Of a stretch of DNA of 64,000 bases, positions 15,682-57,654 are shown piece after piece (position 1 is the stretch's first letter; every line of letters starts with the position of its first letter). The notes beneath the pieces were generated by a model. That model was not told the DNA's origin. It saw nothing but the letters and a program-made list of their open reading frames with translations, and did not search any database. The position numbers were made by a program, and so were the translations under genes. Source of the DNA: Macrostomum lignano (Eukaryota); contig NIVC01000386.1 in the NCBI GenBank assembly GCA_002269645.1, forward strand, positions 124,001 through 188,000. The letters run 5' to 3'.

Positions 15682-15800
15682 AAAATGATATTACAGCATG
15701 TCAAAAATGATATTACAGCATGTCAAAAATGATACAGCATGTCAAAAATTATATTACAGCATGTCAAAAATGATACAGCATGTCAAAAATTATATTACAG
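15682..15800. repeat. 19-22-bp AT-rich tandem repeat (AAAAATGATATTACAGCATGTC)
   Basis: About 5-6 visible copies. Confidence 0.85.
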
Positions 15801-15869
15801 CAAATTCAGAGCAGAAGGATCTGAACACCGCACACATAGACACAAAAGCGGAGTCAATTGTCACTATTT

Positions 15870-19149: not shown

Positions 19150-19816
19150 CTACTAGGAACGATCAACTGTTGAGACATTTTCAGATTTGCCTTTGCTCCG
19201 AGAGACTTCGTTATTTTATTTCAGGTGACGGATAGACAACTCTGCCGACGCGTCGAGTCCGCACACCAAGGTGGCAGCAACCCTACCAAAACAAGGCTAA
19301 CATTTTAGGTTTTTCAGGCAAATCGATAGGCACTACAACGGTGCTATCTAGCTACTTCCGGAGCAGCGAGTTCTAATTCTAGGAACATCTTGAAGAAGTC
19401 GGGAAGGAGCGTAACACTTCCAATAGTTTTTTAAGTGCACAACAAATAAAACTGCGAAAGGAGTGCTCAAAAAACATCTTTAAAAATTCCACTAAAAGCG
19501 AAATTCGCTATATCTAACTGGTATTTTATTCCACTTGGCAATTAAAGCCGATGTGATAAGAATCGATGGAAAAAACTTTTGCTGTTTACATACTGGAGTA
19601 TCCAATTGAAGCGCAAAAAAATAAATTTGGCAAGCAAAATCGCATATAATGGCTCTAAAAATCTGCTTAAATCATTGGATGGTAGTGTGACCGAGCCTGA
19701 ATGATTGTTGGTCAATCATATTTTATGCATGCTTGGATAATCATATTTGGCTTCTGAGTTCAAGTTTAGCCTCATAAATCAATTCACTGAATTCTCTGTG
19801 GATGTGGAGAAGCGGC

Positions 19817-21633
19817 TCAACTCTCTCGAGGCTCCGATGAATCGATGCCTTTCGAGGCGCGCTCGCTCGTGGAGCCCTTGCCTGTGATGCCCTCGCTTGT
19901 AGAGCTCTCGCTTGTGGCGCCCTCGCTTGTGGCGCCCTCGCTTGTGGCACCCTCGCTTGTGGCGCCCTCGCTTGTGGCGCCCTCGCTTGTGGCGCCCTCG
20001 CTTGTGGCGCCCTCGCTTGTGGCACCCTCGCTTGTGGCACCCTCGCTTGTGGCGCCCTCGCTTGTGGCGCCCTCGCTTGTGGCGCCCTCGCTTGTGGCGC
20101 CCTCGCTTGTGGCGTCCTCGCTCCCTTCCTCTGAAGTGGCCGTACTCCTTTTGAGCTTTACTTCAGCCAAAATCGGTGTGTGTGAGGTGTATTCCGCTTC
20201 ACCTTGTTTTTCCCGCATAATCCGCCTCTGTCCGAAGCTGACCTTCCAGTTTCCCTGCTTCTTCTGCCGCAGTGCGAAATTGTCGATTGTTCTGCCTTTC
20301 TCTGATGTGCCGCCCTCATTGAGTGCCAGCTCCAGATTCAACTTTTTGATTTTTTTATGCCATTCGGTTCCATATTCCAGTCTCCGCCGATCATGACGGA
20401 GTCGACATCTTGACCATAACTCACCATCGCTTCGTGTAAAATCCCATAGGCTTTCTCCTTATTTCTCTTGTGTGGCAGATGAACAGAAAAGTACATCAGG
20501 GTCATCCCAGTTTCTCTATGCTTTAGCTTGACAGCCAAATAGCGACCTTCTGCTGAGATGTCATAGTGCCCAGATTCCTTGTCTTTGCCACTTTCCTCAA
20601 TCTCTCTCACAGCGAGCTGTTCCCAAACTTCTGGGTCAAACGCAGTCACGATATTGTCTCGCCCCTTGATGTTATCAACTTCACAGCTCCACTCTAATTT
20701 TTGCACAAATTCCCGACCAGCCTCGATTCTGCTCAACTTAGAAACGGTCAGGATGCTCAGCTGTTTTGTTTCTTCCTGGATATGCTTCACCAGCTGCTCG
20801 AGACCGCTGGCAAGCTTGTCTCCCTGAAGTTTATCCATGCGATCGGTCGCATCAGCGTTGATGGCCAAAGCGAAGAAGCTCGCAGCCTCATCGAGCTTTA
20901 CTTCAGCCAAGACCGGTGCGTGTGAGGTGTATTCAGCTTCACCTTGTTTCTCCCGCATAATCCGCGCCTGTCCGAAGCTTCCGAAGCGGGAGACCTTCCG
21001 ATTTCCCTGCTTCATCTGCCGCAGTGCGAAGTTGTCGACATCTCCGGGGAGTGCCAGCTTTAACTCTAGATTCTCCTCTTTGAAAGTTGTTTTTATGTCA
21101 TTCGGCTCCATATTCCAGTCTCCGCTGATCATGACAGAGTCGACATCTCGACCATATCTCACCATAGCTTCGTTTAAGGCTGCGTAGGCTGTTTTCTTAT
21201 CATCATTACTCCTGTATGGCAGATGAACAGAAAAGTACATCAGGGTCATCCCAGTTTCTTTATGCTTTAGCTTGACAGCCAAATAGCGACCTTCTGCCGA
21301 GATGTCATAACTTATTGTCATAACTTTTCCCCGTAACACAGGGAGCTGTTCCCAAACGTTTGGGTCAAACGCAGTCAGGATATTTTCTCGCCCAAAGTTA
21401 TGAAGTTCGCAACTCCATTTTAATTTGCGCTCCAATTCCCGACCAGCCTTGATGCTGCCCAGCTCAGAGACGGTCAGGATGCTGAGCTGCTGTTCTATTT
21501 CTTCCTGGACATCCTTCACCAGCTGCTCGAGACCGCTGGCAAGTTTGGCTCCATTGAGTTTCTCCATGCGATCGGTCGCGTCAGCGTTGATGGCCAAAGC
21601 GAAGAAGCTCGCCGAGTCTCTGCTGGCAGCCAT
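19817..21633 (-). CDS. Stand-alone EEP (endonuclease/exonuclease/phosphatase, DNase I fold) protein with two tandem domains and an EGATS repeat tail; 1-nt frameshift near 20355
   Basis: Each domain shows AINAD, ILTVSE (S-K in domain 2), FSVHLP, GDWN, (T)IDNF and TSH.P.LAEVKL. The ATG follows the acceptor CTCTCTCTGCAG|AA. One extra A in an A-run joins the ORFs 20338-21633 and 19817-20341. There is a ~13-copy 15-bp repeat at 19905-20115. Confidence 0.75.
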
Positions 21634-22646
21634 TTCTGCAGAGAGAGACAGAGAGAGTGTGATTACGAGCTACACTCAATAAAATATAGATTATAGAATA
21701 TTGCAAAAATGGAAATTTCTAACCTTTAGATATCAGTTTTATCTTCACTTTGGCTTCTGTGAATTCTGCTTCAGCTCGGATATGCTGCTCGGATGCTGGT
21801 GCAATGACAGAATAACAGTTCTCTCAACAGCGTAGCGGCTGCAACCACTGGATACAACAGTAGCAGCTTACTCAGAAGCTAGACTTACTTATAACGAATA
21901 CTTTCAATCCTCTTTGGTTCCTCATACCCTCAGTTTATTGTCCCCCCCACTCACTCTGTACACTTGCGTACAGCTCTCCCCACACTCTCCTGCTGCAGCC
22001 CCAAGCCCTTCCACAGTACAATGGGGCTGGAAGACAAACTGCTTTCTCCCACCTCTTAATCTTTCGTCTCTCGAGCTGAGACGGAATCCTCATAGCGCGT
22101 ATGGAAGTGACACTCCTCGAGGATCGAAAGGGGCAGAAAGACCAACAAGGACAGAAAGGAAATTTAGATGAGAATGCGTGCTATAGAAGGGTGGGAATAA
22201 AAGGTAAATGCCTGGTCCTGACATGCGCTATATAATGTACACTCTGTACACATAAGTGTGTAGTCTGTGGGGCTGGCCCATAAACTCATGCACATGTATC
22301 TTTCTTTCCCTTATCTTCTGTCGGAACTTAGAACTGCAACTTAACTTCTGTCGGTGAACATCAGCAATTGAATGAGCGCATCGAGGAATTTCTTGGAAAC
22401 GATTTTTTGAATGATTTTCAAGGCCTGGTTAGGAAGATTGACACGGCCACAATTCCATCAGGTTTCTTGAGAAGTATCAGCAGCGAATCCATTTTCTTCT
22501 ACCTGATCAGGAAGTCCCAACCTAGTTCAGCACTGTGCCTCTCTTTCATCAGAAGCTTGGTCAGAATCAGCAGAGGACCTGAGCGGCAGGACAAAGGAAT
22601 TTTTGAATTTGTGACTGAGTGTAGCTTTAAAGTCGTTGCTGAGTAG

Positions 22647-23150
22647 CGCTGCCAGATCTGCAGCGGCCAGCATTCCTGGAAGGAGTGCCAGCACGAGGAC
22701 CTGGCGGTCTGCGCAAACTGCGGCGCTTCGCACCGCCCCACCAGTCGACGTCGAGCTTGCACAGTCACCCAGGAGGAGCACAGCAAGGCGACCAGAGCGG
22801 CTGCGGAGGCAAAGCCGCGGCGAGAGCTGCGGAAGCTGCGGCCAGAATCAACCAGTAAGGTGGTAGAGGACATTGTTGCGGGCTGCACTGCAGTATGTTC
22901 TGGGCGTGGCTGGTGCGATCACCAAGTCCTAGTCTCTGGCAGCTAAACTCAAGCCTTGAATTAAAACTTCAGTGCGTTTATCCCAATTTCTACAGCCTGA
23001 CCTCATGCCTTAGCATAGTGTTTAAAAATCTAATTGCAAAAAGACTCACCAAACACATTGAAAACAATAAGACTCTAGGAGAGGACCAATGCGCCTGCCG
23101 AAAAATATACTCCACGTATGACAACCTGTGCCGTCTGGTGCAGGACAATT
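22647..23150 (+). mobile_element. Non-LTR retrotransposon remnant (ORF1 zinc knuckles joined to an RT fragment)
   Basis: CQICSGQHSWKEC and CANCGASH from 22647 resemble I/Jockey-group ORF1 knuckles. SLTSCLSIVFKNLIAKRLTKHIENNKTLGEDQCACRK..STYDNL.RLVQD (~22990-23150) resembles RT domains 1-2. Confidence 0.7.
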
Positions 23151-23541
23151 GTGGCATCAGGGGTGGCTTTAATTAAACTTGTATTCGAAGTAGAAACATT
23201 TGAACATTCAACTACTCTAGGGGTGTTGGGTGATAGCTGGGCTCTTGTGGTGTCCTATTTTCACCTGTAAAATCTAAACTATCAGCTCTGCAACCAACCG
23301 CACTGATACGAGCGTACGCTTCTACCCTAAAATAACAAAACTTGTACGCGCACAGGTTGACGTGAAGTACGTTTAGTCAAACTGTGAAAATATGTTCGGA
23401 AAATGTCATTTCTTCCTGCTCTTTTTTGCCCGGAAACAAAATAAATTTTTAACAGTACCTTAAGTAATATGTAAAAAAATTTGTTTATTTAATTTTTTGT
23501 AACACAGGAATAAAAGATGCGCTTGTTTTCTGTCTAAATAC

Positions 23542-24581
23542 GCTCGTATGAGAAAATCATGCGTGGATAATGGTTGGTTATTCGTAAGTGAGACTTTAGG
23601 ATAATAGTCCGGCTCATGAGTGCGCGCAGAACCGCATTGTCGAATTTCAGTGGGGCCATAGACAAAAAGGGCATCGAAAGGAGAGAGGGGTTACCGAGGA
23701 GAGAGAGACATAAAGACTGAGGTGGTTTACTGGAGTTTGGGCCATAGACAACGAAGTTGCAAACAGGCTGGGGGTTAAGAGGGTGGAAAGGAAGGAGATG
23801 TGGAGAGAAAGAGAGAATAAACCGTAAATAGCTACATTCGCTTGGCCATGGAGAACCAGACGTCATATCCGATCAACTGGGGCAATCTGCCTGTCGAAAG
23901 TTTAGCCAACGTATCTAGCAGCGAACTCAATTGGATCTCAAGACTTTCCACATCTCAGAAGGACATGAAGGATAACGAAGACTTTTTGAACTTCTTGCAC
24001 TTTCTTGAGACCTGGAATCGGCTGGGCATTCGATGAGCGAGATCATGGCTATCACGGGTCAAAAGTCCGAGAGCACGGTCCGGCGCTACCTGGCAGTTAA
24101 ACGGGACAAGTCCCTGCAACAATGCAGCGATGCAGTGTCGCGTGCGTTGAACATGGGACAAAGCGCCGCGACCCACGGTCAAGTAACAATGCCTGCTGAC
24201 ATCAGCATCCAAAGTTCCATCGTGCAAGAAGCAGTGAGCGTGTCTGATGGTCGTCAGATGAACGGTCGGAATATCTTTATTATGAACAACTGCACTTTCA
24301 ACAATTGCAATCTGTAATGGTCTTCGGCATCGGCACTATGACAATTGCGCCATATTGATACTGCACAATTAACTTTCCATAGCGCAAATTTTTTGTTGTT
24401 GGTGTTTGCTGTTTTGTTCTAAAAATAGGTGTCCATTATCCCGAGTTTGAAATCATTATCCTGAAGTTTAAGTGAAAAAATAAATAAATGTGCTCATGGT
24501 TTAACCATAGACGATTGCATTATCCTAAAGGCTGATTTTTGACAATCTGGGCTTAAATAATATAAAATATGTAGCTCGTAT
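23542..24581 (+). mobile_element. Internally deleted Crypton-like (tyrosine recombinase) element
   Basis: LESAGHSMSEIMAITGQKSESTVRRY (24012-24090) matches the C-terminal box of tyrosine recombinases (L..aG....Im..TGH.S....Y), and the ORF ends NNCTFNNCNL. There is an 8-bp direct repeat GCTCGTAT at 23542 and 24574, and a 12-bp inverted pair at 23594-23605 / 24519-24530. Confidence 0.65.
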
Positions 24582-24587
24582 TAGTGT

Positions 24588-25011
24588 TGTAGCGACTTCT
24601 GCCCTCCTTCAGTTGACCTTGCACTCTTCGTTGTTTACTTTCTCGTGCAATTCAGTCTAGCCTTCTCTCTCTCACCCTCTCTTCACTCTGATTTATCCTC
24701 ACTTCGTCCCACTTTAGTCTCTCGATCTCACTCTACCCCTCTTTAGAGTTAAATTGAATATTAAGATAGAAGTAGGTGGGACGCAGGGTCCAAACGGATA
24801 TACAAGTGTATTCGAAAGAAATTAACTTAGGGGGCGGTTGAAACCAGATAATAAAAAGAGGGGTGGAGTGAGAAAGAGATGCAAAAGAGGAACGAGGTGA
24901 GGACCAATCAGAGTGAAGAGAGGGTGAGAGAGAGAAGGCTAGACTGAATTGCACGAGAAAGTAAACAACTAGGAGTGCAAGGTCAACTGAAGGAGGGCAG
25001 AAGTCGCTACA
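24588..25011. mobile_element. MITE-like element with ~155-bp TIRs, TG..CA ends and a 5-bp TSD
   Basis: Arms 24588-24744 and 24854-25011 are reverse complements, near-identical over the first ~105 bp. AGTGT is duplicated at 24583-24587 and 25012-25016. Confidence 0.9.
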
Positions 25012-25150
25012 AGTGTAGCAGTTAGACGAATCGTTTCTGGAATACATTTGAAAATTAAGAAATCACAGTTTTACTTCACAGCAAAATAAAAAAGTTCTCC
25101 ACATGGCATGAGACGTTTTTGTGAGCTCAGTGAACTCAAAGCCAGGCAGC

Positions 25151-25444
25151 TTAGCAACTGTGCCCGTACGAGGGGTCGATCTTTCCGCAGCGAGTGCACT
25201 TGGTGTGGCTGCAGAAGGAGTCGATCTTACCACAGATGCGGCACTCGGTGTGGTTGCAGTACGAGTCGATCTTTCCACAGATTCGGCATTTAGTGTGGTT
25301 GCAGTACGAGTCGATCTTTCCACAGATTCGACATTTAGTGTGGCTGCAGTTGGAGTCGATCCTGCGGCAGATGTTGCACTCGGTGTGCCGCGTGGTGCAG
25401 TTCCGACTGCCGCAGATCCGGCAGATGTAGATTACGCGCGACAT
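25151..25444 (-). CDS. Cys/His-repeat mini-protein, paralog B (97 aa)
   Basis: Six units of HT(K/E)CRICGKIDS(Y/N/F)C(N/S); paralog of 13203-13544. Confidence 0.7.
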   Translation of the reverse strand: MSRVIYICRICGSRNCTTRHTECNICRRIDSNCSHTKCRICGKIDSYCNHTKCRICGKIDSYCNHTECRICGKIDSFCSHTKCTRCGKIDPSYGHSC

Positions 25445-26084
25445 TTCTGCTTCGGATAGAAAAGTGTAAAATATAGTTATCGAATTTTTAATTGCTCTGC
25501 TTCAGTGTAATTATCTTAACTAGTTAGCTAGTTTGCAGTGCTAGAGAATTATTCTTTACTCCTGCATTGCTACGAATTTGTCAAACAGCCCGTGAGTTTT
25601 CTCAATGAGCGGCCGTCGCCAGGCCTAGGAAGGAGGGCAGCACACTCCGGCCTCTGGCTTAAGTCATTTCAAGCTGCATCCTGCATCTAAGCGTCATTAA
25701 AGAGTTCTTTGCATCGAATAAAAATGTTACTGCTTTAAATGCGACAGCTGCGGGCTTAGAGACAACTTACCAGTTATTTGAAATCTTAGCCAATTTCCGA
25801 TGCTTTCTTCTTCGAAAAGAAGTTTTCGAACGCAGATCTAGTAGGTAGAAAGTTCGTCAGTTGTTTTAGCCTTGCGGATCTCCCACTTAAATAAATGTGG
25901 GCTGGGGGTCCGACTAAGCCGAATCTGGAGGGGGGGCGGTGCTCACAAACAATAGCCATTTGATGAATGCATAAAGTAAGAGTTTATTTGAGGCAGAAAG
26001 TTTTTTAATTTCTTTCTCAAAAATGTGCAGAAGCCAAAGAGACCGAGAAACAGAATCTGGAGAAACGGCTTGTCTTCAAAGCAC

Positions 26085-26700
26085 AAGTTTGAGCCTTGAA
26101 TGGGTTGAGAAAGAGTTGCACTCCAGCCAGCCTACAATTGTCCAAGAATGGGGAGAAAGAGTTGCTACTCAAGCCTGCCTGTCTGAGAATGGGTTGGGAA
26201 AGAGTTGCTGCTCCAGCCAGCCTATAGTTGTCTGAGAATGGGTTGGGAAAGAGTTGCTATTCCAGCCAGCCTATAGTTGTCCGAGAATGGGTTGGGAAAG
26301 AGTTGCTACTCCAGCCAGCCTATAGTTGTCCGAGAATGTGTTGGAAAAGAGTTGCTACTCCAGCCAGCCTATAGTTGTCCGAGAATGGGTTGGGAAAGAG
26401 TTGCAACTCAAGCCAGCCTGTCTGAGAATGGGTTGGGAAAGAGTTGCTACTCCAGCCAGCCTATAGTTGTCCGAGAATGGGTTGGGAAAGAGTTGCTACT
26501 CCAGCCAGCCTATAGTTGTCCGAGAATGGGTTGGGAAAGAGTTGCAACTCAAGCCAGCCTGTCTGAGAATGGGTTGGGAAAGAGTTGCTACTCCAGCCAG
26601 CCTATAGTTGTCCGAGAATGGGTTGGGAAAGAGTTGCTACTCCAGCCAGCCTATAGTTGTCCGAGAATGGGTTGGGAAAGAGTTGCTACTCCAGCCAGCT
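26085..26700. repeat. Composite 49/43-bp minisatellite
   Basis: Core GAATGGGTTGGGAAAGAGTTGC followed by either TACTCCAGCCAGCCTATAGTTGTCCGA or AACTCAAGCCAGCCTGTCTGA. Confidence 0.93.
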
Positions 26701-27102
26701 TCTTAAGATTAGCTTTCAGCCAAGCAAACCTGAATTCAAAACCACTAAAAAACGAGCCCACGAACGCAAGACCGAGTATGGCAGTTTGGAAAGGCCTTCG
26801 CAAGTATTGAATTTTAATCGTTTATTTTGATCATCGCGTGAACTGAGAATTACAAAGCTGCTAAACTGAAATAAGAGAGTGGCTTCATTGCTACTGGCAT
26901 CTGTCTTAGGTATTGCTGGGAACTAGTTGGTTTTGGACAATGTAGCGAATTTGCTGCGGTGCATATACACGTATTAGTTTGAATCACGAATTTTAGGGGT
27001 GAGTTTTTGTTCAGTCTTGTTTACCTGCAAAATTAAAGCTAGCAGGATCGTCATAGATACCTTACTACTGTAAACAGTGCGCTAAAAAAGCGAGTTCAGG
27101 TC

Positions 27103-30100
27103 TGTTAAGTAGGAACAAGCGAGACATTTAGGCACGACAAAACTCTTAAGGCCCAAGTTGGCCAAAGTCAGACTATATATATTGTCAAGTGAAGCGGGTT
27201 GAAATATTGATTCATGCAATGTACAGTGTCGCGTGTACATAGAGCTAGTGTGCATTTTGAATTAAGAAAGAGTTCTAAAACGCGACACACAACATCTCCC
27301 AACGCAAGAAATAAGTTTGTTAACCGATTACAGTATTAAAGTATTTAGCAAAATCTCCGAACGGAAGCGGAAATAAAAGCAAATTCGAATGGAAGCGGAT
27401 TTAAAAAAACTACAATCTTTGAGTCATGTTGGACTAATAACATTGGCAACATTGATACAAACAATGCACATTAACTTTAATGCAAAGCTCTGGACCGATA
27501 CAATGCAACAATACACTCCTAATCTCTCCACTGTCTAAGAATACAAAGTCGGAAGTCAATGCGGAATATAACGCGACCTTACGATTCGCAAGCTCAAACA
27601 GTTCCAAAAAACAGTTCATCAAACTTTAACTCAAATCAGAATCAAGCGTCAACTTATCTTCATCAATACAGCGGCTTAACTCGGATGATAGAAAACTGGC
27701 GTTTTGACAACTCGGCCACGCATTGTCCTGTACGGCTCATCTGACTGCTTTGAGGCCGGCTGCACGGAGGCCGGCTGCGCAGAGGCCGGCTGCACGGAGG
27801 CCGGCTGCACGGAGGCCGGCTGCACAGAGGCCGGCTGCGCAGAGGCCGGCTGCACAGAGGCCGGCTGCACGGAGGCCGGCTGCGCAGAGGCCGGCTGCAC
27901 AGAGGCCGGCTGCACGGAGGCCGGCTGCGCAGAGGCCGGCTGCACGGAGGCCGGCTGCTCAGCCTCGTCGACATCCTCGCTGTCACAATGGAGAGACTCG
28001 CTGAATGGCACATCTACCATTCGAGGCCTGATGAAACGGCGATTCCTTCTGAGCAGCTGACCAGTCTCGGTTCGAACCCAGTACGACCTTGGACAATTCT
28101 CCAGCTCGCTGTCGATCTCAGCAGCCACCCAGTCGCGACGACCTCGTTGGAGCCAGACCAGATCACCAGCAGCTAGTCTCCTCAATGGTCGAGCTCCTCG
28201 GTTGTACAACTGCGCTGCCCGAGTGCGCTGCTTCTCAAAGGCCTCTATGCTTGAGTGTAGGTGAATTTCCTTTGGCCGCAAATCTTGAACAGTTGCAGGC
28301 AAGTCGCACCTGAGCTTACGACCGAATGCCATCTCAGCTGGACTCGGAAAGCCGCTGCCGACTGGGGTGTTGCGGTAGTGAAGCAACGCCAGCTCCAGGT
28401 TCTGTCCAGTCTCTGAGCACTTCTTCAGCATATTCTTTGCCGTTTGTACGTAGCGTTCTGCTCTTCCATTTGATTGCGGGTACGTCGGACTTGAAGTTCG
28501 GTGCTCGACCTTGAATTCTGCTATCGTCTGTCGAAATTCCCGAGCGGAAAACTGTGGACCTCCGTCGCTGACGAGTTTCTCTGGCACTCCGAAGTTTTGA
28601 AAATGGTCCCGAATCACTGAAACGACAGCTGCGCTGGTGGTCGATCTCATTCGAGTGACATTCATCCAGCGACTGTAGGAGTCCACGTACACCAGGTAGG
28701 ATGAACCGCCGAACTCGAACAGGTCTGTGGAGCAATCTTGGAATGGGAAGCTCGGCATGTCCCCCGTCATCAGCGTCTCCTTAGACTGGGTTCTCATGTT
28801 TCGCTGACAAGACTCGCAGTCAGTGACGACCTGCTCCACACAGCTCCGCATTCCTGGCCAGTAGAAATAGTCCTTAGCCTTGAGGTGCATTTTCACGATG
28901 CCTGGGTGCCCAGCATGAAGAATTTTGAGCACCTGTTTCCTTGAATCTCCGCTGGGAACATAGATCCGGTCCTTCAAGCACAAAAGTCCGGAAGCATAGG
29001 TCAGGTCATGCCGAACGTCCCAAAACGGCTTCAGGTCGTCTGTCAACCTCGCTCTGTGCTCTGGCCAACCGTCTAGGATGACATTCCGCAACCGCTCGCT
29101 CGTCATATCTTTGGCTGTTGCATTCTTGATCATGTGCAAGATCTCGCGGTCCCCGCTAAAGCAGCGCTCGACTGATAGGACTTGACCATCGAGGGCTTCT
29201 TCTAGCTGAATTGTGAGGAGATCAGCTGCACCGTGTGCTCGGCTCAATGTGTCGGCTACGTGCAACTCCTTTCCGGGAGTGTACTTGACGCGAATGTCAT
29301 AAGGCTGCAACTGGAGCATAAGTCGCTGAATTCGAGGCGTTGTGTCACACAGAGCCTTCTTGAAGATCGCCTCCAATGGCTTGTGGTCGCTCTGGACATG
29401 CACTGTCCGGCCCCAGATGTATCGATGGAACTTTTTGCAGCCATAGACAATAGCAAGAAGCTCTTTCTCGATTTGTGCATATGCTCGCTGGGCACTGGTC
29501 ATTGCAGAGGACGCGTATTCGACTGGGCGATGGTCTTGTAGCAGCACTGCGCCAATTCCACTCTTGCTTGCGTCGACTGAAACCGTTACGGGCTTGGCTG
29601 TGTCAAAGGTAGCCAGCACCCGGTTCGAGCACAGATCCGCGATGATTGCATCATACGCCTGGTCGTGCTGATCCAGCCAGCTCCATATGATTTCCTTCTT
29701 CAGGAGATGCCTCAGTGGTTCCGCAGTGGCTGACAGGTGCGGGCAGAATCTTGCCAAGTAGGTGACACAGCCGAGAAAACGCCTCAGTTGCTCTTTCTTT
29801 GCGGTTACGCCTTCCAGAGAGTCGGGTCTTGCCATCTGCTTGATTGCCTTGACCTTCTGTGGATCAGCTCGAATTCCATCAGGGCCCAGAATATCACCTA
29901 AGTAGTTCAGCTCTGGGGCTCCAACTCGCATCTTGTTCGGATTCAGCGTCACGTTAGCGCGCTTGCACTGCTCCATCAGGCTGCGAACTGCAGTGTCATG
30001 TTCCTCGATGGTGCGCCCCCACACGATAATGTCATCGAAAAAGTTTTTCGAGTTCTTGACGTGACCGGTGACATTCTCCTCCATGCGCTTTTGGAACACT

Positions 30101-32091
30101 TCGGGGATCGATGATAAGCCGTACGGCACCCGCTTCCACCTGTAACGGCCGAATGGAGTATGGAACGTAGTGAGGAACGAGCTCTGCTCATCTAGCTTGA
30201 GCTGATGGAAACTCTCGTTGGCGTCAAATGTGCTGTACACCACGGCTCCAGCAGTCGCCATCCGAACTTCCTCCGCCGTTGGAATCGGGTGATATTCGCG
30301 GATGATGAACTGGTTCAGGTATGTTGGATCAAGGCATAGGCGCATCGAGCCGTCCTTCTTCCAGACAATGGTGACGTTTGAAACCCATTGAGTCGGCTCG
30401 TCTACTCGAACAATTTTCCCATCTCTCTCCAGGCGCTCCAGCTCGCACTTCAATGGCTGATAGGCCGCGAATGGAACCTTGCGTGGCGGCTGGACTTTTG
30501 GAGCGGCATTTTCTGTTAGCTGAATTGTGTACTGCTGCTTCATGCACCCGACACCTTTGAACACAGTCGGATAGTCTGCTATCAGCTGGCTGCTAGTGAT
30601 CTGAGACTGGTGGGGTTTCTCAACTTTGCTGAGATTGGCTGGGCTCTTGTTTATGGCAAAAAGCTTCCTGATGAGATGCAACTCATGCAGTGCTGACTTC
30701 CAACCTATGATCGGAGTCGCGTTTTCTCCAACGACTACAAACTGAAGTTTAACGTTTTTCTGACACGGAGACGAAACTGTCAGGTGAGTTAGGCCGACGA
30801 CATCCAGCTGCTGTCTGTTGTAGGTAGTGAGTGTCCAGGATGTGGGCTCAATTTCAGCCGCAGGGGCGAACTTGATCAGGCATCGCAGCGGAACAACGTT
30901 GACATCTGCCCCAGTATCGACCTTAAACTGGAGCATCCGTCCCGAATCCTTTGCCGTGAGATTCACCATCATTGCTGAGTAGTCGTGCAGACGCTGAGCT
31001 TCCAGTTTCTCAACTGTCATGACTGTCGCTGGTTTTGCCTCTTGGTCAGCGTCATCCAGCTGCTGCTTGTCCTCCTGGAGCTCGTTGACTTTCTTTGAGG
31101 ACCGGCACATTGACGAGAAGTGGTTCAGACGGCCACAGCTGTTACACTTCCTACCGTAGGCTGGGCATTTTCTCCGCTCGTGCTGCAGTCCGCAGAAGCC
31201 ACAGCCGCGGCCTGAAGGCGGTTTTGGTGGGCCAGCTGGTGCTCGGGGTCCACCTTGGACAACATCCACCGTTGACGGCGGAGCTCGGCCGCTCTGAGTT
31301 GCCAGCAGAGCGCTAGCCTGTCGCTTTGACGTCTCCGAAGCCCGTCCCATCTGAATTGCACGGTTGAGTGTCAGGTTGGACTCACGGAGTAGTCTCTCTT
31401 TGAGCGCTGGGTCGCCGACTCCGATCACGATCTGGTCGCGGATGACGCTGTCGCCGACTGACTCGCCGTTGGCCGGTGTCGCGTAGTTGCACCTGGTCAC
31501 GAGCTGTCGCAGAGAGGCAACGAACTGATCGAAGTCTTCCGACTCCTTCTGCACTCTGGTTCTGAACAGGTAGCGGTCGAAGGTCTCGTTGCTCATTGGC
31601 TCACAGTAATTCTTGAATTGATTGAGAACCCCAGCGTATGTCGCCACTTCGGCTGTCGGGAAGGTGGAGAACACGTCTTGTCCTTCTGATCCGAGCGCAG
31701 TCAACAGTATTGCAATCTTGACCTCTTCGCTCTCCTCCGTCTTCTTGGTTGCCTTCATGTAGAAGTCGATCGCTTTGCTCCATTTTCTCCAGTTATCTGC
31801 GCGATTGGCATCAAAAACCATCGGCTCTGGAGGCCTCAGTCCTTCCATTAGCTAGCTTGCTTGGCTATTGGGGGAAAGTACTTTATGCTTGCGACGCCAT
31901 GTTAAGTAGGAACAAGCGAGACATTTAGGCACGACAAAACTCTTAAGGCCCAAGTTGGCCAAAGTCAGACTATATATATTGTCAAGTGAAGCGGGTTGAA
32001 ATATTGATTCATGCAATGTACAGTGTCGCGTGTACATAGAGCTAGTGTGCATTTTGAATTAAGAAAGAGTTCTAAAACGCGACACACAACA
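27103..32091 (-). mobile_element. Full-length Gypsy/Ty3 LTR retrotransposon, Mag-type
   Basis: 192-bp LTRs at 27103-27294 and 31900-32091 (TG..CA, identical by eye). TSD AGGTC at 27098-27102 and 32092-32096. PBS TGGCGTCGCAAGC abuts the 5' LTR, and a short PPT GGGAGA precedes the 3' LTR. Confidence 0.97.
27676..31848 (-). CDS. Gag-pol polyprotein (1390 aa): gag with double zinc knuckle, PR, RT, RNase H, IN
   Basis: CGFCGLQH..KCPAYGRKCNSCGRLNHFSSMC; protease VDTGAD; RT FDANESFHQL and FFDD; RNase H VDASKSGIG; integrase H..H/CESC, DLFE, SDGGPQF, AERYVQ. PR-RT-RH-IN order. Confidence 0.97.
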   Translation of the reverse strand: MEGLRPPEPMVFDANRADNWRKWSKAIDFYMKATKKTEESEEVKIAILLTALGSEGQDVFSTFPTAEVATYAGVLNQFKNYCEPMSNETFDRYLFRTRVQKESEDFDQFVASLRQLVTRCNYATPANGESVGDSVIRDQIVIGVGDPALKERLLRESNLTLNRAIQMGRASETSKRQASALLATQSGRAPPSTVDVVQGGPRAPAGPPKPPSGRGCGFCGLQHERRKCPAYGRKCNSCGRLNHFSSMCRSSKKVNELQEDKQQLDDADQEAKPATVMTVEKLEAQRLHDYSAMMVNLTAKDSGRMLQFKVDTGADVNVVPLRCLIKFAPAAEIEPTSWTLTTYNRQQLDVVGLTHLTVSSPCQKNVKLQFVVVGENATPIIGWKSALHELHLIRKLFAINKSPANLSKVEKPHQSQITSSQLIADYPTVFKGVGCMKQQYTIQLTENAAPKVQPPRKVPFAAYQPLKCELERLERDGKIVRVDEPTQWVSNVTIVWKKDGSMRLCLDPTYLNQFIIREYHPIPTAEEVRMATAGAVVYSTFDANESFHQLKLDEQSSFLTTFHTPFGRYRWKRVPYGLSSIPEVFQKRMEENVTGHVKNSKNFFDDIIVWGRTIEEHDTAVRSLMEQCKRANVTLNPNKMRVGAPELNYLGDILGPDGIRADPQKVKAIKQMARPDSLEGVTAKKEQLRRFLGCVTYLARFCPHLSATAEPLRHLLKKEIIWSWLDQHDQAYDAIIADLCSNRVLATFDTAKPVTVSVDASKSGIGAVLLQDHRPVEYASSAMTSAQRAYAQIEKELLAIVYGCKKFHRYIWGRTVHVQSDHKPLEAIFKKALCDTTPRIQRLMLQLQPYDIRVKYTPGKELHVADTLSRAHGAADLLTIQLEEALDGQVLSVERCFSGDREILHMIKNATAKDMTSERLRNVILDGWPEHRARLTDDLKPFWDVRHDLTYASGLLCLKDRIYVPSGDSRKQVLKILHAGHPGIVKMHLKAKDYFYWPGMRSCVEQVVTDCESCQRNMRTQSKETLMTGDMPSFPFQDCSTDLFEFGGSSYLVYVDSYSRWMNVTRMRSTTSAAVVSVIRDHFQNFGVPEKLVSDGGPQFSAREFRQTIAEFKVEHRTSSPTYPQSNGRAERYVQTAKNMLKKCSETGQNLELALLHYRNTPVGSGFPSPAEMAFGRKLRCDLPATVQDLRPKEIHLHSSIEAFEKQRTRAAQLYNRGARPLRRLAAGDLVWLQRGRRDWVAAEIDSELENCPRSYWVRTETGQLLRRNRRFIRPRMVDVPFSESLHCDSEDVDEAEQPASVQPASAQPASVQPASVQPASAQPASVQPASVQPASAQPASVQPASVQPASVQPASAQPASVQPASKQSDEPYRTMRGRVVKTPVFYHPS

Positions 32092-32194
32092 AGGTCAACC
32101 TAATAACTAAAAATCAATCAGCTAGTTATTTAACAGAGGCTTCTAAATACCTTCCTACAAAAGTTTCTGAGGATCTGAGTTCCCAAGGCGACCT

Positions 32195-32893
32195 CTAGGC
32201 CGATGTTTCCTCGTCTTTTTCCGGCGGAGGTTTTTTAAAGTCGTTTTCATCACCTGCCACCTGCTCTTCTCTTGATGGACTTCTGGTAGCAGCGTCCTCG
32301 GCCGCAGCAGCTCGTTTTTCATCCGGCTTCTCCCGGCTTCTGGCAGCAGCGTCCTCGGCCGCAGCAGCTCGTTCTTCATCCGGCTTCTCTGGGCTTCTGG
32401 CAGCAGCGTCCTCGGCCGCAGCAGCTCGTTCTTCATCCGGCTTCTCTGGGCTTCTGGCAGCAGCGTCCTCGGCCGCAGCAGCTCGTTCTTCATCCGGCTT
32501 CTCTGGGCTTCTGGCAGCAGCGTCCTCGGCCGCAGCAGCTCGTTCTTCATCCGGCTTCTCCGGACTTCTGGCAGCAGCGTCTTCAGCGGCAGCTCGTTCT
32601 TCATCCAGAATCCCTGGGCTCTTTTCTGCAGCGTTCTGAACACGAGCTTGGTCTTCCAGCAGCCTTCCATCAGCGTCGTCCCCTGCACTGGCGCGCTCTT
32701 CAGCCAGACCCTTACGAGATTTACCTCCGGTGACAGAGTCTTCTGATCCCTTATGACTTCCGACTTTCACGGGATAATTCCCTCGATTTCTTGGAGCATC
32801 CATTGAAGAGATCGCGTCTTGCGTCTGAGCCGCGGAGGAATAGTACAGCTGGGTTAAAAGTACACCCAGAAACAGCGAGCTGTAGATCTTCAT
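32195..32893 (-). CDS. Secreted acidic Ala/Glu-rich repeat protein (232 aa)
   Basis: MKIYSSLFLGVLLTQLYYSSAA is signal-peptide-like, followed by ~6 copies of a 57-bp/19-aa unit SPEKPDEERAAAAEDAAAR. The ORF track extends further upstream, but the likely start is ATG at 32893. Confidence 0.65.
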   Translation of the reverse strand: MKIYSSLFLGVLLTQLYYSSAAQTQDAISSMDAPRNRGNYPVKVGSHKGSEDSVTGGKSRKGLAEERASAGDDADGRLLEDQARVQNAAEKSPGILDEERAAAEDAAARSPEKPDEERAAAAEDAAARSPEKPDEERAAAAEDAAARSPEKPDEERAAAAEDAAARSPEKPDEERAAAAEDAAARSREKPDEKRAAAAEDAATRSPSREEQVAGDENDFKKPPPEKDEETSA

Positions 32894-34588
32894 CGCTTCA
32901 GCTTGATTTCTGGGAAACAATTGCGTTCTGAATGAAGTCACCCGCTCGCTTACTCGCGACTGAAGCCGAAATAAACTCGTGCGCTCTCTGACCGACTGCT
33001 CGCCTTCGCTGTACAGACTCGAGTCTGCTCTGTCTATGGCCAGCATTGCGTTCGAGAAATTCCTGGCTAATGTTTTGTAAAGTACCGGTAGCTCGTACTT
33101 ATGCGAACGTACTTTTACTGGCCCATTTTTCTGTGATAGTTTAAGAAATCCACAGGACACGTTTGAAGCCAGAGACAAGATTCTTCTGTAACGAAAGCTT
33201 CAGAACAATTTTTCTTGTAAAAACTTGCGTCTAAAAGCTTATGCGTACTACTTACAGTAGCTGGAGAGCGCCATGTTTATAGACAGCTCAGCTTTGTTGA
33301 CTCAGAACTTTCTTCCAGCATTACTGCTAAACATCTGTTCAGCCTAAAAAGTACTCAAACGTAGGAGTGTTGGCGGCAGGTTACCCCTGCTAGAATAGCT
33401 TTGAGCTGCCAAGTCAAATGCAATGGAGAGCTTTCAGAATCAAAGAGTTAAAAGCTGCCGAACAAACGCATCAAATTCGAAAGATCCTGAAGTGTCGCAG
33501 CCTAAAAATTGTTGCTTTTTAAAAAATGAATGAACCCTATAAAGCAACAGAGAAGCTTGAGAAGCTACTGAGAATTTCGGTGGTATAAGAAAGAGTTAAA
33601 AGTGCGAGACTTGAGCCATGCTTGATTGCTTCAATAGGGGCAGCCCTTCGGCTCTAATACCGGTAGATGCTTTCAGTCGGAGGCAAATCCTTGTATAAAT
33701 ATTGATGGAGCAATGCTTGCTGTCATGATTGTATTCAGCTTCCCGGACCAAATATTGTTGAAATCCCTTTTAAAAAAGTCTTGGGCACTTTAAAAGAGCT
33801 ACTTAGGGAGCTACTAACGGTAGTATGAACCGGCCTTAAGTTAAGTCATCAATCGCATATTGTTTTCTAACCCGATTAAGACCTTTACCAACCTTTTGTA
33901 TACAACTCTGCATTGCTTCAGTTCACCCAGCTGTAAAATGGGTGCCAGCATTAGCTGGGGTAATTGAGCATGTGTGTGGCGACCCTCCCCCCAGTCCTTG
34001 GACTGAACAGCTGTACGCAGCCTTCAGATGCTGCGGCTGAGCTGTCGGTTGCATATCTGCTTATTAGCACAGGTTCAATAATAGAATTTAACGCTTTTAC
34101 GAGTATTAAGATACTGGTACTATTTTAGTGACTCAGAATTCAAGAAAAAAATAAATGAGATCTCATCCTGCTGCTTCCAAAAATGCGAACTGACTTAGTT
34201 TTTGTGTATTACACATCGCATGATGCTCTTTCAAAGCAATCCATTTTCCATGCTGCCATCGATTTATTTCTGTTGGGGCTTCACATTCCAAGTCACAGGG
34301 GGGGGGGTGGTCCGAGTTTGCCAGGCAAACAGCACGGAATCTCCATCTGTGTTTGACACAAATAACGACGAAATGAGAGCCTCCTCGCTCGCAGTTTGCC
34401 GAGAAACAACAGAAGGAATCGCTCCTGATAGTCGCAATTGGCTCCTTGAGATGCCTTTTGCGAAAGAATCTCGGGAATGGAAGACAGTTCAGGACTGAAT
34501 CCTGACGGACAGCAGGTGAAGTGCAAACAAAACCCGGTTCAGTATCTATATAACAAACGCTTGATGCAATATACAGTGCAGCTGAAAG

Positions 34589-35688
34589 ATGGCTCCCGAA
34601 TTGACAGGCTGCATCTGTCTGCTGCTGCTGGTTGCCTGCGGCTCTGCCAGCGTCTGTCCGGAGTGCTCTGCGGTGTACGAACTGCTGACCAGCAGCTGCC
34701 CCGCGATTCCGCCTGGCACCGCGGCTGAGGCTTCGCCCAGCGAGCCGGAGTGCGTGCTCCGCTGCACCCTGAGCAGCGAGTGCCGCCTGTCCGTGTACCT
34801 GCGAGACACCAGAGCCTGCTACTCCCTGCCGGCGGTGGCGTCATCAACCACTTTGGATTGCGGCGCCTCCGGGATGGTTGTTCGCCGTAAGAAGATTTTG
34901 CCGTCGGCTGCACTGACAGCCCTGAGCTTCGCAACGCGGATCGTAATGTTCTACGACTTCAGGAAGGGCTTTGAAAACCTGGCCAACCCTGCCATACTGG
35001 TGGCAGAGCCAGTGAATATTCTGCTAAAGAATTCAATTGGCGGAGTTCGTCTGAAAAACTCGACCAGCTCCTATGTGCGAGTGAGCACCCCGGGATTCTA
35101 CCGGTACTTCTTGTACGGACCAAAGTTCAGCATCTTCTTTCAGGGGAAGTTCTCGTCAGACTCTGCGTAAGTCGTTTCCCTGCATTGCTCTATCGAAGAC
35201 TTCTAACAGATTAGAGAGGTATGATTAGGAAAACGAAAATATTTGATTCCAGAGACAAATGCATCAGCACCTTCACCGACATGGGCACTGGGCTCCATGA
35301 CAGCCGCATCCATGCCCGATCCGATGGAGTGCTGGCAGCTGGCGTCCACTTTCTCAACGGCATGACCTACTCCTCGTCCTGGAGGAGCACTAATGCTCTC
35401 ACAGTCGACTCCGTTGAGCGAACGATCACGTTTGGGATAAATTTCGAAGGAAATTCCTTCAGTGCTCAGGCGTATTTGAACGGCACTGTGCTGAGCAGAG
35501 CTGGAAGCGGTGGTGACAGCGACATCACTAAGAAAGAGCTTCTGAACATCCACGACTACCTGCTGCTCGGGCGCTGCACGGATGACTTCATGCAACCGTT
35601 GAATGGCTGGCTGAGGTGCTGGGGCTTCGTCACCGGCAACTTGGGCATCAGCCAGTTTGACCAGCTGAGCAGTCTTTGCAGCTCTTGA
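34589..35688 (+). CDS. Secreted PAN/apple + ConA/LamG-like domain protein (2 exons)
   Basis: Signal peptide; PAN-like Cys core ECVLRCTLSSECRLSVY..ACY..DCG; beta-rich C-terminal part ending AYLNG..LLLGR..PLNGWLRCW. Intron 35167-35252 (GC|GTAAGT..TTCCAG|A, phase 2) joins the two ORFs in frame. Confidence 0.7.
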
Positions 35689-36585
35689 ACTCGATCAACT
35701 CAATGAAAGCTCAGCGACTGACACCGAGAAAAGGAAGGAGAAAGACAAGAACTGCCCTCCCAAACCTTTTTATGGACACGTGCTGACAATCTTTTCGATA
35801 ATTATTGACAACTAGAAATTGACAACAAATTCCTAGAAATTTCAGAAATATACAGAAATCAGAGTTGGCACAAGTACTTTTAGGTTCTTCATATGCATTC
35901 AAATTGCACTTTAGAGAAACGAAGTGCTGCATTCTTGCACAGGAGGTTTCTTTTAATCTTCAACGGTCACCCAACTCAGCTGGGCTGATCTTTTCAAGAG
36001 TGTGAGTTGTCGGGGAAGCGAAGGAGCAATCTCAGCGAAGTGCTCTTTGGTTTGATTGATGCAGTCTTGGTGCCTTAGGCCTCACAATGCTGTGCGTGAA
36101 GATGAGGCGCAGTGGGCAGGGCAGGGTTATGAGCTGTGCGAGTGATCAAAAGTGTCAGGCACATGCGAGCTACTGGCTCCCAATAGTTTTCGAAAGTGCA
36201 CAACAAATAAAACTGCGAAATGAATTTCACTAGAAGCGAAATTCGCTTTAGGTAGTTTGTATTTTATCACAATTTAAAATTGAAAGTGAAAATAATTTTT
36301 TCCTGTCAATAATCAAACCAATGGTAAAAACCTTTTGCTGCAGCACAATTGCTGAAGTAGCCGATTTAAGTGCAAAAAAGTACATTTGGTAAGCGAAATC
36401 GCACAATGGCTCTGAAAATCTGCTTTAATCATTTGATGATGGTATGATCGCCTGAAGTACAGGTATTGTTGGTCAATCATATTTTATGCATGCTTGGATA
36501 AATATATTTGGCTGCTGAGTTCAAGTTTAACCTCATAAATCAATTCAATGAGTTCTCAACGGATAAGAAGCTGTGGAGAAGCAGC

Positions 36586-37542
36586 TCAACTTTCTCGGGG
36601 CTCCGATGAGCCGAAGCTTTTCTTGGCGTGCTCGCTTGTGGCGCCCTCGCTTGTGGCGCCCTCGCTTGTGGCGCCCTCGCTTGTGGCGCCCTCGCTTGTG
36701 GCGCCCTCGCCTGTGGCGCCCTCGCTCACAGCCTCTGAATTGGCCTCACTCTTATTGAGCTTTACTTCAGCCCCAATCGGTGCGTGTGAGGTGTATTCAC
36801 CTTGTTTTTTCCGCATAATCTGCGTCTGTCCAAAGCTGACCTTCCAGTTTCCCCGTTTCTTCTGCAGCAGTGCGAAATTATCGATGGTCCTGCGTCCCGG
36901 TGAGGTGCCGCCATCCACATCTCTGGAGAGTGCCAGCTTAAACTCCAGATTCTCCTTTCCTTCTGCAGGCGTTTTTACGAACTTTTCAACTATTTCACTC
37001 GGCTCCATATTCCAGTCTCCACCGATCATGACGGAGTCGACATCTTGACCATAACTCACTATCGCTTCGTGTAAAATCCCATAGGCTTTCTCCCTATTAC
37101 TCTTGTGTGGCAGATGAACAGAAAAGTACATCAGGGTCATCCCAGTTTCTTTATGCTTTAGCTTGACAGCCAAATAGCGACCTTCTGCTGAGATGAAATA
37201 GTCCCCAGATTCCTTGTCTTTGCCACTTTCCTCAATCTCTTTCACAGCGAGCTGTTCCCAAACTTTTGGGTCAAACGCAGTCAGGATATTTTCTTGCCTC
37301 TTGATGTTATCAACTTCGCAGCTCCAATTTAATTTTCCCACAAATTCCCGACCAGCCTCGATGCTGCTCAACTCAGAGACGGTCAGGATGCTCAGCTGCT
37401 GTTCTGTTTCTTCCTGGACATCCTTCACCAGCTGCTCGAGACCGCTGGCAAGCTTGTCTCCCTGAAGTTTCTCCATGCGATTGGTCGCATCAGCATTGAT
37501 GGCCAAAGCGAAGAAGCTAGCCGAGTCTTTGCTGGCAGCTAT
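36586..37542 (-). CDS. Stand-alone single-domain EEP protein, paralog of 19817-21633; expected start codon reads ATA
   Basis: Same motifs (AINAD, ILTVSE, SVHLP, GGDWN, TIDNF, TSHAP) and an EGATS tail. The same acceptor CTCTCTCTGCAG|AA is followed by ATA instead of ATG. Homologous 5' and 3' flanks. Confidence 0.7.
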   Translation of the reverse strand: MAASKDSASFFALAINADATNRMEKLQGDKLASGLEQLVKDVQEETEQQLSILTVSELSSIEAGREFVGKLNWSCEVDNIKRQENILTAFDPKVWEQLAVKEIEESGKDKESGDYFISAEGRYLAVKLKHKETGMTLMYFSVHLPHKSNREKAYGILHEAIVSYGQDVDSVMIGGDWNMEPSEIVEKFVKTPAEGKENLEFKLALSRDVDGGTSPGRRTIDNFALLQKKRGNWKVSFGQTQIMRKKQGEYTSHAPIGAEVKLNKSEANSEAVSEGATGEGATSEGATSEGATSEGATSEGATSEHAKKSFGSSEPRES

Positions 37543-39114
37543 TTCTGCAGAGAGAGACAGTGCTCACGCTAATACAACACATAGCCCTTAAATGTTTCAC
37601 ATGGCAATGAGCAATGCTTGCACTCAATAAGAATATGGAAAGCTAAAATAGCAAAAAATGAAACTAACCTTAAGATGCAGTTTTAACTTCACTTTGGCTT
37701 CTGTGAATTCTGCTTCAACTCGGATATTTTGGTGCAATGAAATAATAAGTTTTCTCTCAAGTGCGCAGCAGCTGCAACCCCTGCGCTTCATGGCTTTTAA
37801 AAGTTGTATGCAGACAGCACTAGCGAAGTGGCGTACATGCTGGTGTACATTTCTTCTGCGTACATTCTTTAATTCTTTAGATTCGAATCGCTTCAGGTTA
37901 GCAACTGGTGAGTGCTTTTCCTTCTGCACTCGCTACTGCAAAGATTAGAGTACAGGCAGCTTGGTCGACAGTGCGAGCTATTCGTACACGATTACAGGGT
38001 AGCAAGCCCGCGAGTACTTTGCTCTCCTAGACTCTGGCCTGCACAAAAACATAAGTTCCCCCCACAGAACCCGAGTTCGCATGCAATTGTTATTTTTACC
38101 AATGACTGCAATAAACTCCAACTGTGACCCTTCAGCAGCGTACACGGACGGCGAAAGCAGAAAGCAAAGTAAATGTCTACTGATGTCTACTGACATCAAT
38201 CTGATGTCTGATGTCAAAATAAATAGCTTGTGTAACTGAAGGCTTTCTTAGCCGTCTGGTTCGGCAGTTCAAACACGCTGACGATTTCAATGCTTTGCGT
38301 CAGTCAAATCTGGTGTTGTTTTCCAACACCCCTGCATGGATGCTGACGCTCACTGCTGGATTTCAACTGCTCCAGCATCATTTGTGAGGCAGATGCCAAT
38401 AGTTCAAGTGGGGTGAGTGGCAGAAGGATTTACTAACGGGATATGAGTGGCTGACATGTCGCGCTCTATAGTCGATCTTGTATTTACTGTTTGCTATTCC
38501 GGGACGTCCAAGGCTAGTTTAAAAACAGCCGGTTGCTAAGGGCGCGGTTTGGTTGAAACACCTGCTGTGAGCTTATTCGCTGCAGTTCCAAGATTTCTTT
38601 GTCTAACATTTCATTTTGCAGCCAATACTTTGCCATAGGGCTAAAGACTGAGTTTGGATTGATTGACACGCGAGGCTGGCCCTACAAAGTGCTTGAGACC
38701 GAACTGGTAGCAACCCCATCAATCGGCTAGCGAAGGAACTTTTGCTCTGAAATTGACAATTTCGCACCTTGACTGCATTCTATATTTATTCAAACTGGCC
38801 ATGCGTTCCATTGGCTTTAAATTTCGAAGTTTAAACGCAAATTTTACTCTAAGCTGCCCGGATGATCAGCAGTGGAAGCCCGACCCTGCCTGGCATATAG
38901 CCAACGCAACGATTTGTGAAACTGTTGTTTTGTTAATTTTGAACGCAAATAGGCACAAAACTGATTAAAGTGTTTAACGATGGCTCCGTTGTTTGCTGAA
39001 TTTTATAAGAAAAAATTCAAACCCGATGGCCTCATCTGAATGAACTGTGCAGTATACACCCATCCGATCTGTGTGGTCAATTTAGCCATCATACAATGTA
39101 CATTATAATGTACG

Positions 39115-48890: not shown

Positions 48891-48904
48891 CCGCAAGCGG
48901 GAGA

Positions 48905-57636: not shown

Positions 57637-57654
57637 AGCTATGAACGGCTGCGT

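Follow-up and report, generated by a model that had tools for sequence, protein, structure and literature searches.

A 64,000-nucleotide stretch of the Macrostomum lignano genome (contig NIVC01000386.1, positions 124,001 to 188,000; the window) carries two genes that encode endonuclease/exonuclease/phosphatase (EEP) domains, two of them fused in gene 1 and a single one in gene 2. On balance, and with modest confidence, the two genes are read as young paralogues from a small M. lignano gene family, encoding stand-alone, intracellular, metal-dependent EEP phosphoesterases of a sparse and uncurated clade. They are best filed as an unusual subfamily of a known enzyme superfamily, possibly decaying in the window. 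An earlier note on this DNA had ranked them among the best candidates for a new system. That description is too strong, as they are isolated single-enzyme genes that form no system with their neighbors, and the UniProt name of their intact paralogue is already 'Endonuclease/exonuclease/phosphatase domain-containing protein'.

The annotated protein of gene 2 (P0001, 36586-37476) maps to NIVC01000386.1 (639 kb) of assembly GCA_002269645.1 (M. lignano Mlig_3_7). A tblastn search with the single-domain protein retrieved exactly three paralogous domains of about 250 amino acids in the window, in agreement with the earlier note, and one more in a paralogous region of contig NIVC01001626.1 (L001). 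Besides the query itself (37542-36589), the window matches were 20889-20356 with 20341-19997 (85% and 70% identity, E = 1e-125) and 21633-20884 (67% identity, E = 7e-104). The protein encoded in L001, PAA65713.1 (BOX15_Mlig011052g1; P0002), was the sole close relative of P0001 among 5.8 billion clustered proteins in a word-indexed homologue search. The two are 83% identical by BLASTP with the tail counted and about 91% over the core, and PAA65713.1 is the fully intact member of the group. Contamination as the source of the genes was excluded because of their spliceosomal intron, a resident retrotransposon and a paralogous region, 97% identical, on another large contig.

Fold and active-site motifs of the clade

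A word-indexed search with the alignment as query returned 10 proteins only. When 1.84 billion representatives were searched exhaustively with the flatworm profile in HMMER, 57 proteins scored at E ≤ 0.001, and 12 of these reached E ≤ 1e-10. These relatives are mostly 190–430 amino acids long, are 22–35% identical to the query and align over the whole domain. Conservation was counted in a 58-row family alignment and in a smaller 31-row alignment, which was also supplied to AlphaFold.

With the five M. lignano rows alone, the AlphaFold model was unusable (pLDDT 44). With the 31-sequence alignment, AlphaFold2 gave a model with pLDDT 91.9 and pTM 0.91, in which the four-layer α/β sandwich of EEP proteins is predicted. 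Foldseek found 174 matches to this model in the PDB at E ≤ 0.001. The best 50 of the 174 were all EEP proteins, among them INPP5K, TDP2, nocturnin, CNOT6L, neutral sphingomyelinase 2 (nSMase2), DNase I and bacterial EEPs, with E-values of 6e-12 to 5e-10, TM-scores of 0.53–0.69 and 9–14% identity. When the profile was compared with PDB sequences, 17 weak matches were obtained, all to EEP enzymes. The window proteins themselves stay below the gathering threshold of the Pfam family PF03372, and their link to it is transitive, via the relatives: 21 of the 58 family members matched PF03372 at E ≤ 0.01 (best 6.7e-9), as did seven of the 10 closest relatives, below the Pfam threshold. Because the structural matches, the all-EEP profile matches and the PF03372 matches of the relatives agree, the predicted fold is considered secure even though the clade lies outside current curated models. 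The identification of the domains as EEP in the earlier note was thus borne out.

Most of the EEP active site is retained. Asn16 and Asp18 (in AINADAT) and Glu57 (in TVSEL) are present in domain 1 (D1) of gene 1, in the single-domain copy and in PAA65713.1, while domain 2 (D2) has Lys in place of the Glu. The GDxN motif is present as GDWN, and Asp221, the His-orienting Asp, is kept. Across the clade, H143, G175, D176 and N178 show no variation in the 58 rows, and P145 is also invariant in the 31-row alignment, where N16, D18, E57, S118, G121, Y123, D221, N222 and P255 are nearly so. Among the aligned members, Glu57 is found in 55 of 56, Asn16 in 48 of 50, Asp18 in 50 of 50 and Asp221 (of IDNF) in 51 of 54. 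The clade signature can be written as [AI]N-x-D-x-[ST]NR, [ST]E, SVHLPHK, GDFN (GDWN here), TT..x-DN and [FL][ST]H-x-P.

The S-D-H motif is the point of departure from other EEP enzymes, and the basis for calling the domain a variant. His253 is kept but is preceded by Ser. All copies read Y-T-S-H and G-D-W-N, in agreement with the TSH and GDWN of the earlier note. Over 53 aligned members, the residue before the catalytic His is Ser in 25, Thr in 13, His in five, Asp in three, Glu, Lys and Asn in two each, and Cys in one. GDWN replaces GDFN in seven of the 58 members, including the two closest non-flatworm relatives. Since this column is dominated by Ser and Thr, and since the clade consensus 'fsH.P' aligned on 'SDHFP' of 3l1w in the comparison with PDB sequences, loss of the Asp characterizes the clade as a whole and did not arise in the M. 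lignano genome. The proposal that an altered specificity arose locally has to be dropped for this reason.

In other EEP enzymes, the Asp before the catalytic His helps to bind metal (D308 in APE1, D350/D358 in TDP2), and its absence could mean weak or no catalysis. In the extreme case, the clade would consist of pseudoenzymes in which the EEP scaffold is kept as a binding protein and metal-dependent catalysis was lost together with the Asp. The scarcity of Asp at this position (3/53) and its presence in solved EEP enzymes, as seen in the alignment with 3l1w, are in line with such a loss. Nevertheless, this is improbable: N16, D18, E57, H143, D176, N178, D221 and H253 are invariant or nearly so among proteins that are 22–35% identical, which is hard to explain without catalysis, and the equivalent APE1 mutant, D308A, retains substantial activity. 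Conservation of the other catalytic residues even among very divergent members leads us to infer a clade of active enzymes whose metal site is modified.

By analogy with characterized EEP enzymes, Glu57 together with Asn16 and Asp18 would hold a divalent metal ion, while His253, oriented by Asp221, would activate the attacking water. His143, Asp176 and Asn178 are predicted to hold the scissile phosphate. The replacement of Asp by Ser or Thr before the His has probably altered the metal site without abolishing it. The N-x-D arrangement of strand 1 is also known from APE1 and TDP2, and Asp18 may take a larger share of metal binding. A phosphodiester in a nucleic acid or nucleotide, as for TDP2, CCR4 or nocturnin, is the best guess for the substrate. 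A signal peptide is absent, as noted earlier: the N-terminus has no hydrophobic stretch (maximum Kyte–Doolittle(11) 1.45), and residues 7–16 form the first core strand of the model. An intracellular location would be expected.

If the clade is active, EEP enzymes can do without the Asp of their near-universal 'SDH' motif. Members of the clade would then define a subfamily that current Pfam models miss, which would help to annotate roughly 60 proteins from protists and metagenomes and might lead to a new class of substrate. For the flatworm, the stakes are low, since the local copies look partly broken and have no tie to a multi-gene system.

In four clade members from outside the window (P0008, P0009, P0017 and P0018), the EEP domain is fused to a shared Cys-rich motif at the N-terminus. 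This motif reads M-[VT]-C-[GS]-C-C-G-x2-G/K-x-N/T-x3-C-S-C...SH-x-C and resembles a zinc knuckle or an acylation site.

Comparison with known EEP families

The domains share with the EEP superfamily (PF03372, clan CL0530) the predicted fold, the stand-alone domain of about 250 amino acids and the order of motifs, namely strand-1 Asn (with Asp), strand-2 Glu, the xHL His, GDxN, the xD(x) Asp and a C-terminal His-x-Pro. They differ from it in the Ser/Thr that replaces the Asp of S-D-H, in the position of the window proteins below any Pfam threshold, and in the clade-specific elements [ST]NR after strand 1, HLPHK, TT..xDN and S..GKY. The model lies at a similar structural distance from TDP2, nocturnin/CCR4, INPP5K, sphingomyelinase, DNase I and giant-virus EEPs. 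Judged by the model and the motifs, the domains appear to belong to none of these families in particular.

TDP2 ranks with the best structural matches (E = 9e-12, TMt as high as 0.69), and the window sequence shares with it the strand-1 N-x-D and the xHL motif. The xHL motif is typical of TDP2, CCR4 and INPP5 enzymes, and its counterpart xPN of APE and LINE (long interspersed nuclear element) nucleases. TDP2 itself combines an N-terminal UBA domain with GDTN and SDHWG motifs. The window proteins have neither a UBA nor another domain in Pfam, read GDWN and TSHAP instead, have Ser in place of a TDP2 Asp (mouse D358) and DN instead of DR after the penultimate Asp, and are 10–13% identical to TDP2 in the Foldseek alignments. 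Membership in this family is unsupported. The CCR4 deadenylases and nocturnin (CNOT6L, NOCT and PDE12) are likewise top structural matches (E = 3e-11 to 6e-11, TM-score about 0.62), were matched weakly by the profile and have the xHL and GDxN motifs. Identity to them is 12–14%, and the window proteins lack a leucine-rich repeat or partner domain and have Ser-His for Asp-His.

The best Foldseek E-value (5.6e-12) belongs to INPP5K, with a TM-score of 0.51–0.54 and a root-mean-square deviation of 8.5. Inositol polyphosphate 5-phosphatases are marked by the signatures WxGDxN[FY]R and P[AS]W[CT]DR[IV]L. As the window proteins read IGGDWNMEP and RTIDNFALL at these places, this candidate was rejected. 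The CdtB family was also rejected: NCBIfam NF011787 gave 12–17 bits (E = 0.003–0.09) against a cut-off of 189, and matches at this noise level reflect only the common EEP core. In BFVD, the best matches were mainly viral proteins annotated as EEP, most of them from giant viruses (Edafosvirus, Clandestinovirus, Klosneuvirus and others), with E-values of 3e-13 to 1e-10. They are no closer than cellular EEPs (TM-score 0.55–0.65, 12–16% identity).

Endonucleases of LINE elements are EEP domains as well, and the window domains could be APE-type LINE endonucleases that were domesticated and lost their reverse transcriptase (RT). This origin is given very little weight. Only two of the 58 relatives matched the Pfam family PF14529, very weakly (E = 0.0018 at best), while 21 matched the general PF03372. 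An RVT domain was found in none of the 58 members, which upholds the description of the enzymes as stand-alone and RT-free, and no RT domain is on record among the neighbors in the related loci examined. The strand motif SVHLPHK is of the xHL and not of the xPN type, and no LINE endonuclease structure is among the best 50 of the 174 Foldseek matches. The duplicated unit described below has kept its intron and lacks terminal repeats. Nesting among LINE endonucleases with RT-attached copies, which the earlier note had named as decisive against its reading, thus found no support in the motif, Foldseek, domain and neighbor tests. The same note's statement that no RT is adjacent stands in so far as none is linked to the EEP genes; one does sit between the two genes (open reading frame (ORF) 27676-31848), as part of a separately inserted long terminal repeat (LTR) element that is the sole RT source nearby.

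Structure, defects and duplication of the two genes

The features of both genes are collected in Table 1. The homologous upstream exon and the conserved donor AAG/GTTAG (slash, exon border) reported earlier were recovered alike in gene 1, gene 2 and the L001 paralogue, and the acceptor TCTCTCTCTGCAG/AAAT(G/A) is conserved across the three copies. In silico splicing indicated that the 5' exon is non-coding, a point absent from the earlier note; in gene 1, an in-frame stretch upstream of the main exon has no ATG. The EGATS tail varies in length, as described before, and the L001 paralogue has about one unit.

Table 1. Features of the two EEP genes, in positions of the window.
Feature	Positions	Strand	Description	Basis
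Gene 1 main exon	19817..21635	-	ATG 21633-21631, stop 19819-19817; two tandem EEP domains and repeat tail	sequence, ORFs, tblastn
Gene 1 domain 1 (D1)	20887..21633	-	N, D, E, H, GDWN, DN and TSH all kept	alignments
Gene 1 domain 2 (D2)	20144..20886	-	Glu to Lys and frameshift	sequence, alignments
Gene 1 (EGATS)n tail	19856..20122	-	15-nt tandem repeat, 17.8 copies	TRF
Gene 1 intron	21636..21723	-	88 nt; GT 21723-21722, AG 21637-21636	sequence, three-copy alignment
Gene 1 non-coding 5' exon	21724..21850	-	ends AAAG/GTTAG; 5' end undefined, homology with gene 2 to about 21850	
Gene 2 main exon	36586..37544	-	single EEP domain and repeat tail; stop 36588-36586	
Gene 2 (EGATS)n tail	36631..36726	-	15-nt tandem repeat, 6.4 copies	TRF
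Gene 2 intron	37545..37668	-	124 nt; GT 37668-37667, AG 37546-37545	three-copy alignment
Gene 2 non-coding 5' exon	37669..37783	-	ends TTAAG/GTTAG	

Defects in every window copy, in the start, in the Glu and frame, or in a loop, had been overlooked in the earlier note. Gene 2 has ATA (37542-37540) in place of the start codon ATG of gene 1 and the L001 paralogue, and in its main frame a TAA (37672-37670) stands immediately 5' of the splice junction. An in-frame ATG is thus not reached before codon 23 (37476, MEKLQ). The annotated protein P0001 begins at this Met23, past the strand bearing the conserved Asn16 and Asp18.

In gene 1, D2 is joined to D1 directly and in frame (...AEVKLDE/AASFFALAIN...). 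D1 lacks 11 residues of the conserved 'GGTSxxGRT' loop that precedes the DN motif and bears the conserved 'TT..G' motif of the family. D2 has Lys (AAG, 20739-20737) at the nearly invariant position of the catalytic Glu57, and a frameshift at 20341/20338, inside 'ATAAAAAAATCAAAAAGTTGA', with the frame lost past GDWNMEPNGIKK. As assembled, gene 1 is therefore broken at about 20341 into ORFs 20338-21633 (431 amino acids) and 19817-20341 (174 amino acids) in adjacent frames. Between 'ATA' and 'CTGGCACTC', D2 has 26 nt, D1 has 36 nt and the single-domain copies have 54 nt. The D2 frameshift adjoins runs of A7 and A5 and may be an error of the assembly, since Mlig_3_7 was assembled from PacBio data with Canu and polished with Pilon.

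Several results, together with the missing Asp, weigh against reading the two genes as encoding working EEP enzymes. A potentially disabling change is found in all three window copies, and gene 1 has no annotated protein. The Pfam search gave no EEP match to the window proteins even at E ≤ 10, and a sequence search of the PDB with these proteins gave no match. The pairwise ratio of non-synonymous to synonymous substitution rates (dN/dS) is high (0.48–0.83 in six pairs). Values below 1 were significant for D1–D2 and at the border of significance for two other pairs, and the remaining three lacked significance; overall, four of the six are not significantly below 1. The coding core of gene 2 is 94.5% identical to its L001 counterpart (window 36748-37542 versus L001 10001-10795), compared with 97.2–98.6% for the flanks, 5' exon and intron. 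Finally, the locus tag Mlig011052 was not found in full texts or supplements of M. lignano expression papers, and no expression table or phenotype was obtained.

That the window copies are pseudogenes or decaying duplicates of a family that may work elsewhere, for example as PAA65713.1, is a realistic explanation, although it is held at less than even weight. The change from ATG to ATA with a TAA just upstream would mark gene 2 as decaying, but AUA is a near-cognate start codon and P0001 was annotated from a transcript. Both lesions of D2 point the same way, although the frameshift may be an assembly artifact as described above. D1 lacks part of a conserved loop, yet it has all catalytic residues and an intact ATG, so that gene 1 could yield an active one-domain enzyme with a C-terminal extension. 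Decay would also fit the lack of an annotated protein for gene 1, the greater divergence of the gene 2 coding sequence than of its flanks, and the absence of a 10.9-kb segment with gene 1 from L001. Pairwise dN/dS is high, but significantly below 1 for D1–D2 (0.48, Fisher P = 0.0006); for the Sw–SL pair it is 0.49 (P = 0.04). With the Glu and frame of D2 and the start codon of gene 2 lost at such dN/dS values, an expansion of the family by domain duplication, as the earlier note proposed, is doubtful.

With regard to expression, the GenBank gene models of Mlig_3_7 were derived from transcripts that had been assembled with the genome as guide and filtered by their coding potential (PMC5730564), which gives P0001 and P0002 RNA support.

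The duplicated unit includes the 5' exon and reaches about 400 nt beyond the stop (36177-37783 versus 19417-21850). Because its intron was kept and no terminal inverted repeats were found bounding it, it is read as a duplication at the DNA level; neither a retrocopy nor the cargo of a DNA transposon is supported. Synonymous divergence (dS) from the single-domain genes is about 0.15 for D2 and 0.18–0.31 for D1. As D2 is nearer to these genes, the sequences suggest that gene 1 consists of an older paralogue joined to a younger copy exactly at the domain borders. The fusion would have been in frame and head to tail, with D1 as the older part and D2 derived from a copy close to the single-domain gene.

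Sequence exchange among the copies probably followed. The 44 differences between the gene 2 core and its L001 counterpart are clumped: nt 245-521 are free of them, and 33 fall in nt 522-770. For most of the differing sites, one of the two alleles also occurs in D1 or D2. Given this mosaic sharing, we attribute the extra divergence of the core to gene conversion between the paralogues. Diversifying selection in the C-terminal third was considered as an alternative; gene conversion appears to fit better.

The segment missing from L001 spans about 14878-25764. L001 is otherwise collinear with the window (94–97% identical), and the segment represents an insertion/deletion difference between duplicated genome copies.

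Relatives of the clade and surroundings in the window

All named relatives come from protist transcriptomes, namely those of Lapot gusevi (Rhizaria), Gloeochaete wittrockiana (a glaucophyte) and Mantoniella beaufortii (a prasinophyte). The remaining ones lie on metagenome contigs or contigs of SRA assemblies, and the closest non-flatworm relative is on a contig of 961 nt. No other animal sequence was found in either protein collection searched. This patchy spread over a flatworm, a glaucophyte, a prasinophyte, a rhizarian and unassigned metagenome contigs offers a small test case for gene transfer into animals.

The loci of the relatives are of different kinds. Four of them (L003-L006) are gene-dense on both strands and almost wholly made up of ORFan genes, with cyclin, zf-MYND and copine/vWA neighbors, and the EEP gene is at the contig end in three. 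Their organization resembles that of giant viruses. Scans of IMG/VR with two single relatives found no clade member, and Pfam searches with ten large neighbors of relatives on gene-dense contigs gave no informative domain; no hallmark gene was seen. Another four loci (L012-L015) are sparse, eukaryote-like DNA; L015 is a gene-poor contig of 727 kb from ENA ERZ25068633. One relative, P0024, belongs to a 90% cluster of 39 near-identical members; the 15 that are listed were found in gene-poor, eukaryote-like DNA, on ENA contigs as long as 1.3 Mb. Such copies point to a multi-copy family or a mobile unit, and the one cluster copy whose surroundings were examined has no RT domain on record nearby.

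Horizontal acquisition by the flatworm lineage is possible, as is an old eukaryotic family that was lost almost everywhere. A more far-reaching scenario makes the M. lignano genes the only animal members of an undescribed, Asp-less EEP clade with a new substrate, transferred to the flatworm from a protist or giant virus and subsequently fitted with an intron in the 5' untranslated region. Taken as a whole, this scenario is unlikely.

The LTR retrotransposon between genes 1 and 2 (27103-32091) has identical LTRs of 192 bp (27103-27294 and 31900-32091). Its ORF encodes a single gag-pol protein of 1390 amino acids, in which RVT_1, RNase H, an integrase zinc domain and the rve core were recognized when it was searched in pieces. 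The whole element is missing from L001. Because L001 has the empty site, it is a recent insertion, unrelated to the EEP genes.

Other duplications were also seen in the window. A tandem segmental duplication of about 4 kb (99.7–99.8% identical) occupies 40545-48519 overall. Each copy carries a long Thr/Pro-rich, mucin-like ORF of 830–880 amino acids with (T5-7P)n repeats (40327-42957 and 44445-46943), and the N-terminal Cys-containing region of these ORFs resembles ORF 34589-35170. A further local duplication is represented by two near-identical ORFs (...SFIGTGAFKRAAVCSLESGAVLACNPADFTPTVQQV...) at 4449-5015 and 9178-9591, about 4.7 kb apart. Long tandem-repeat arrays lie at 546-1477, 1673-2428, 5863-7524, 8249-9025, 43195-44633, 47181-49762, 54537-55373 and 57541-59425. 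They give spurious long ORFs in several frames, and the EGATS tails fit this repeat-prone background.

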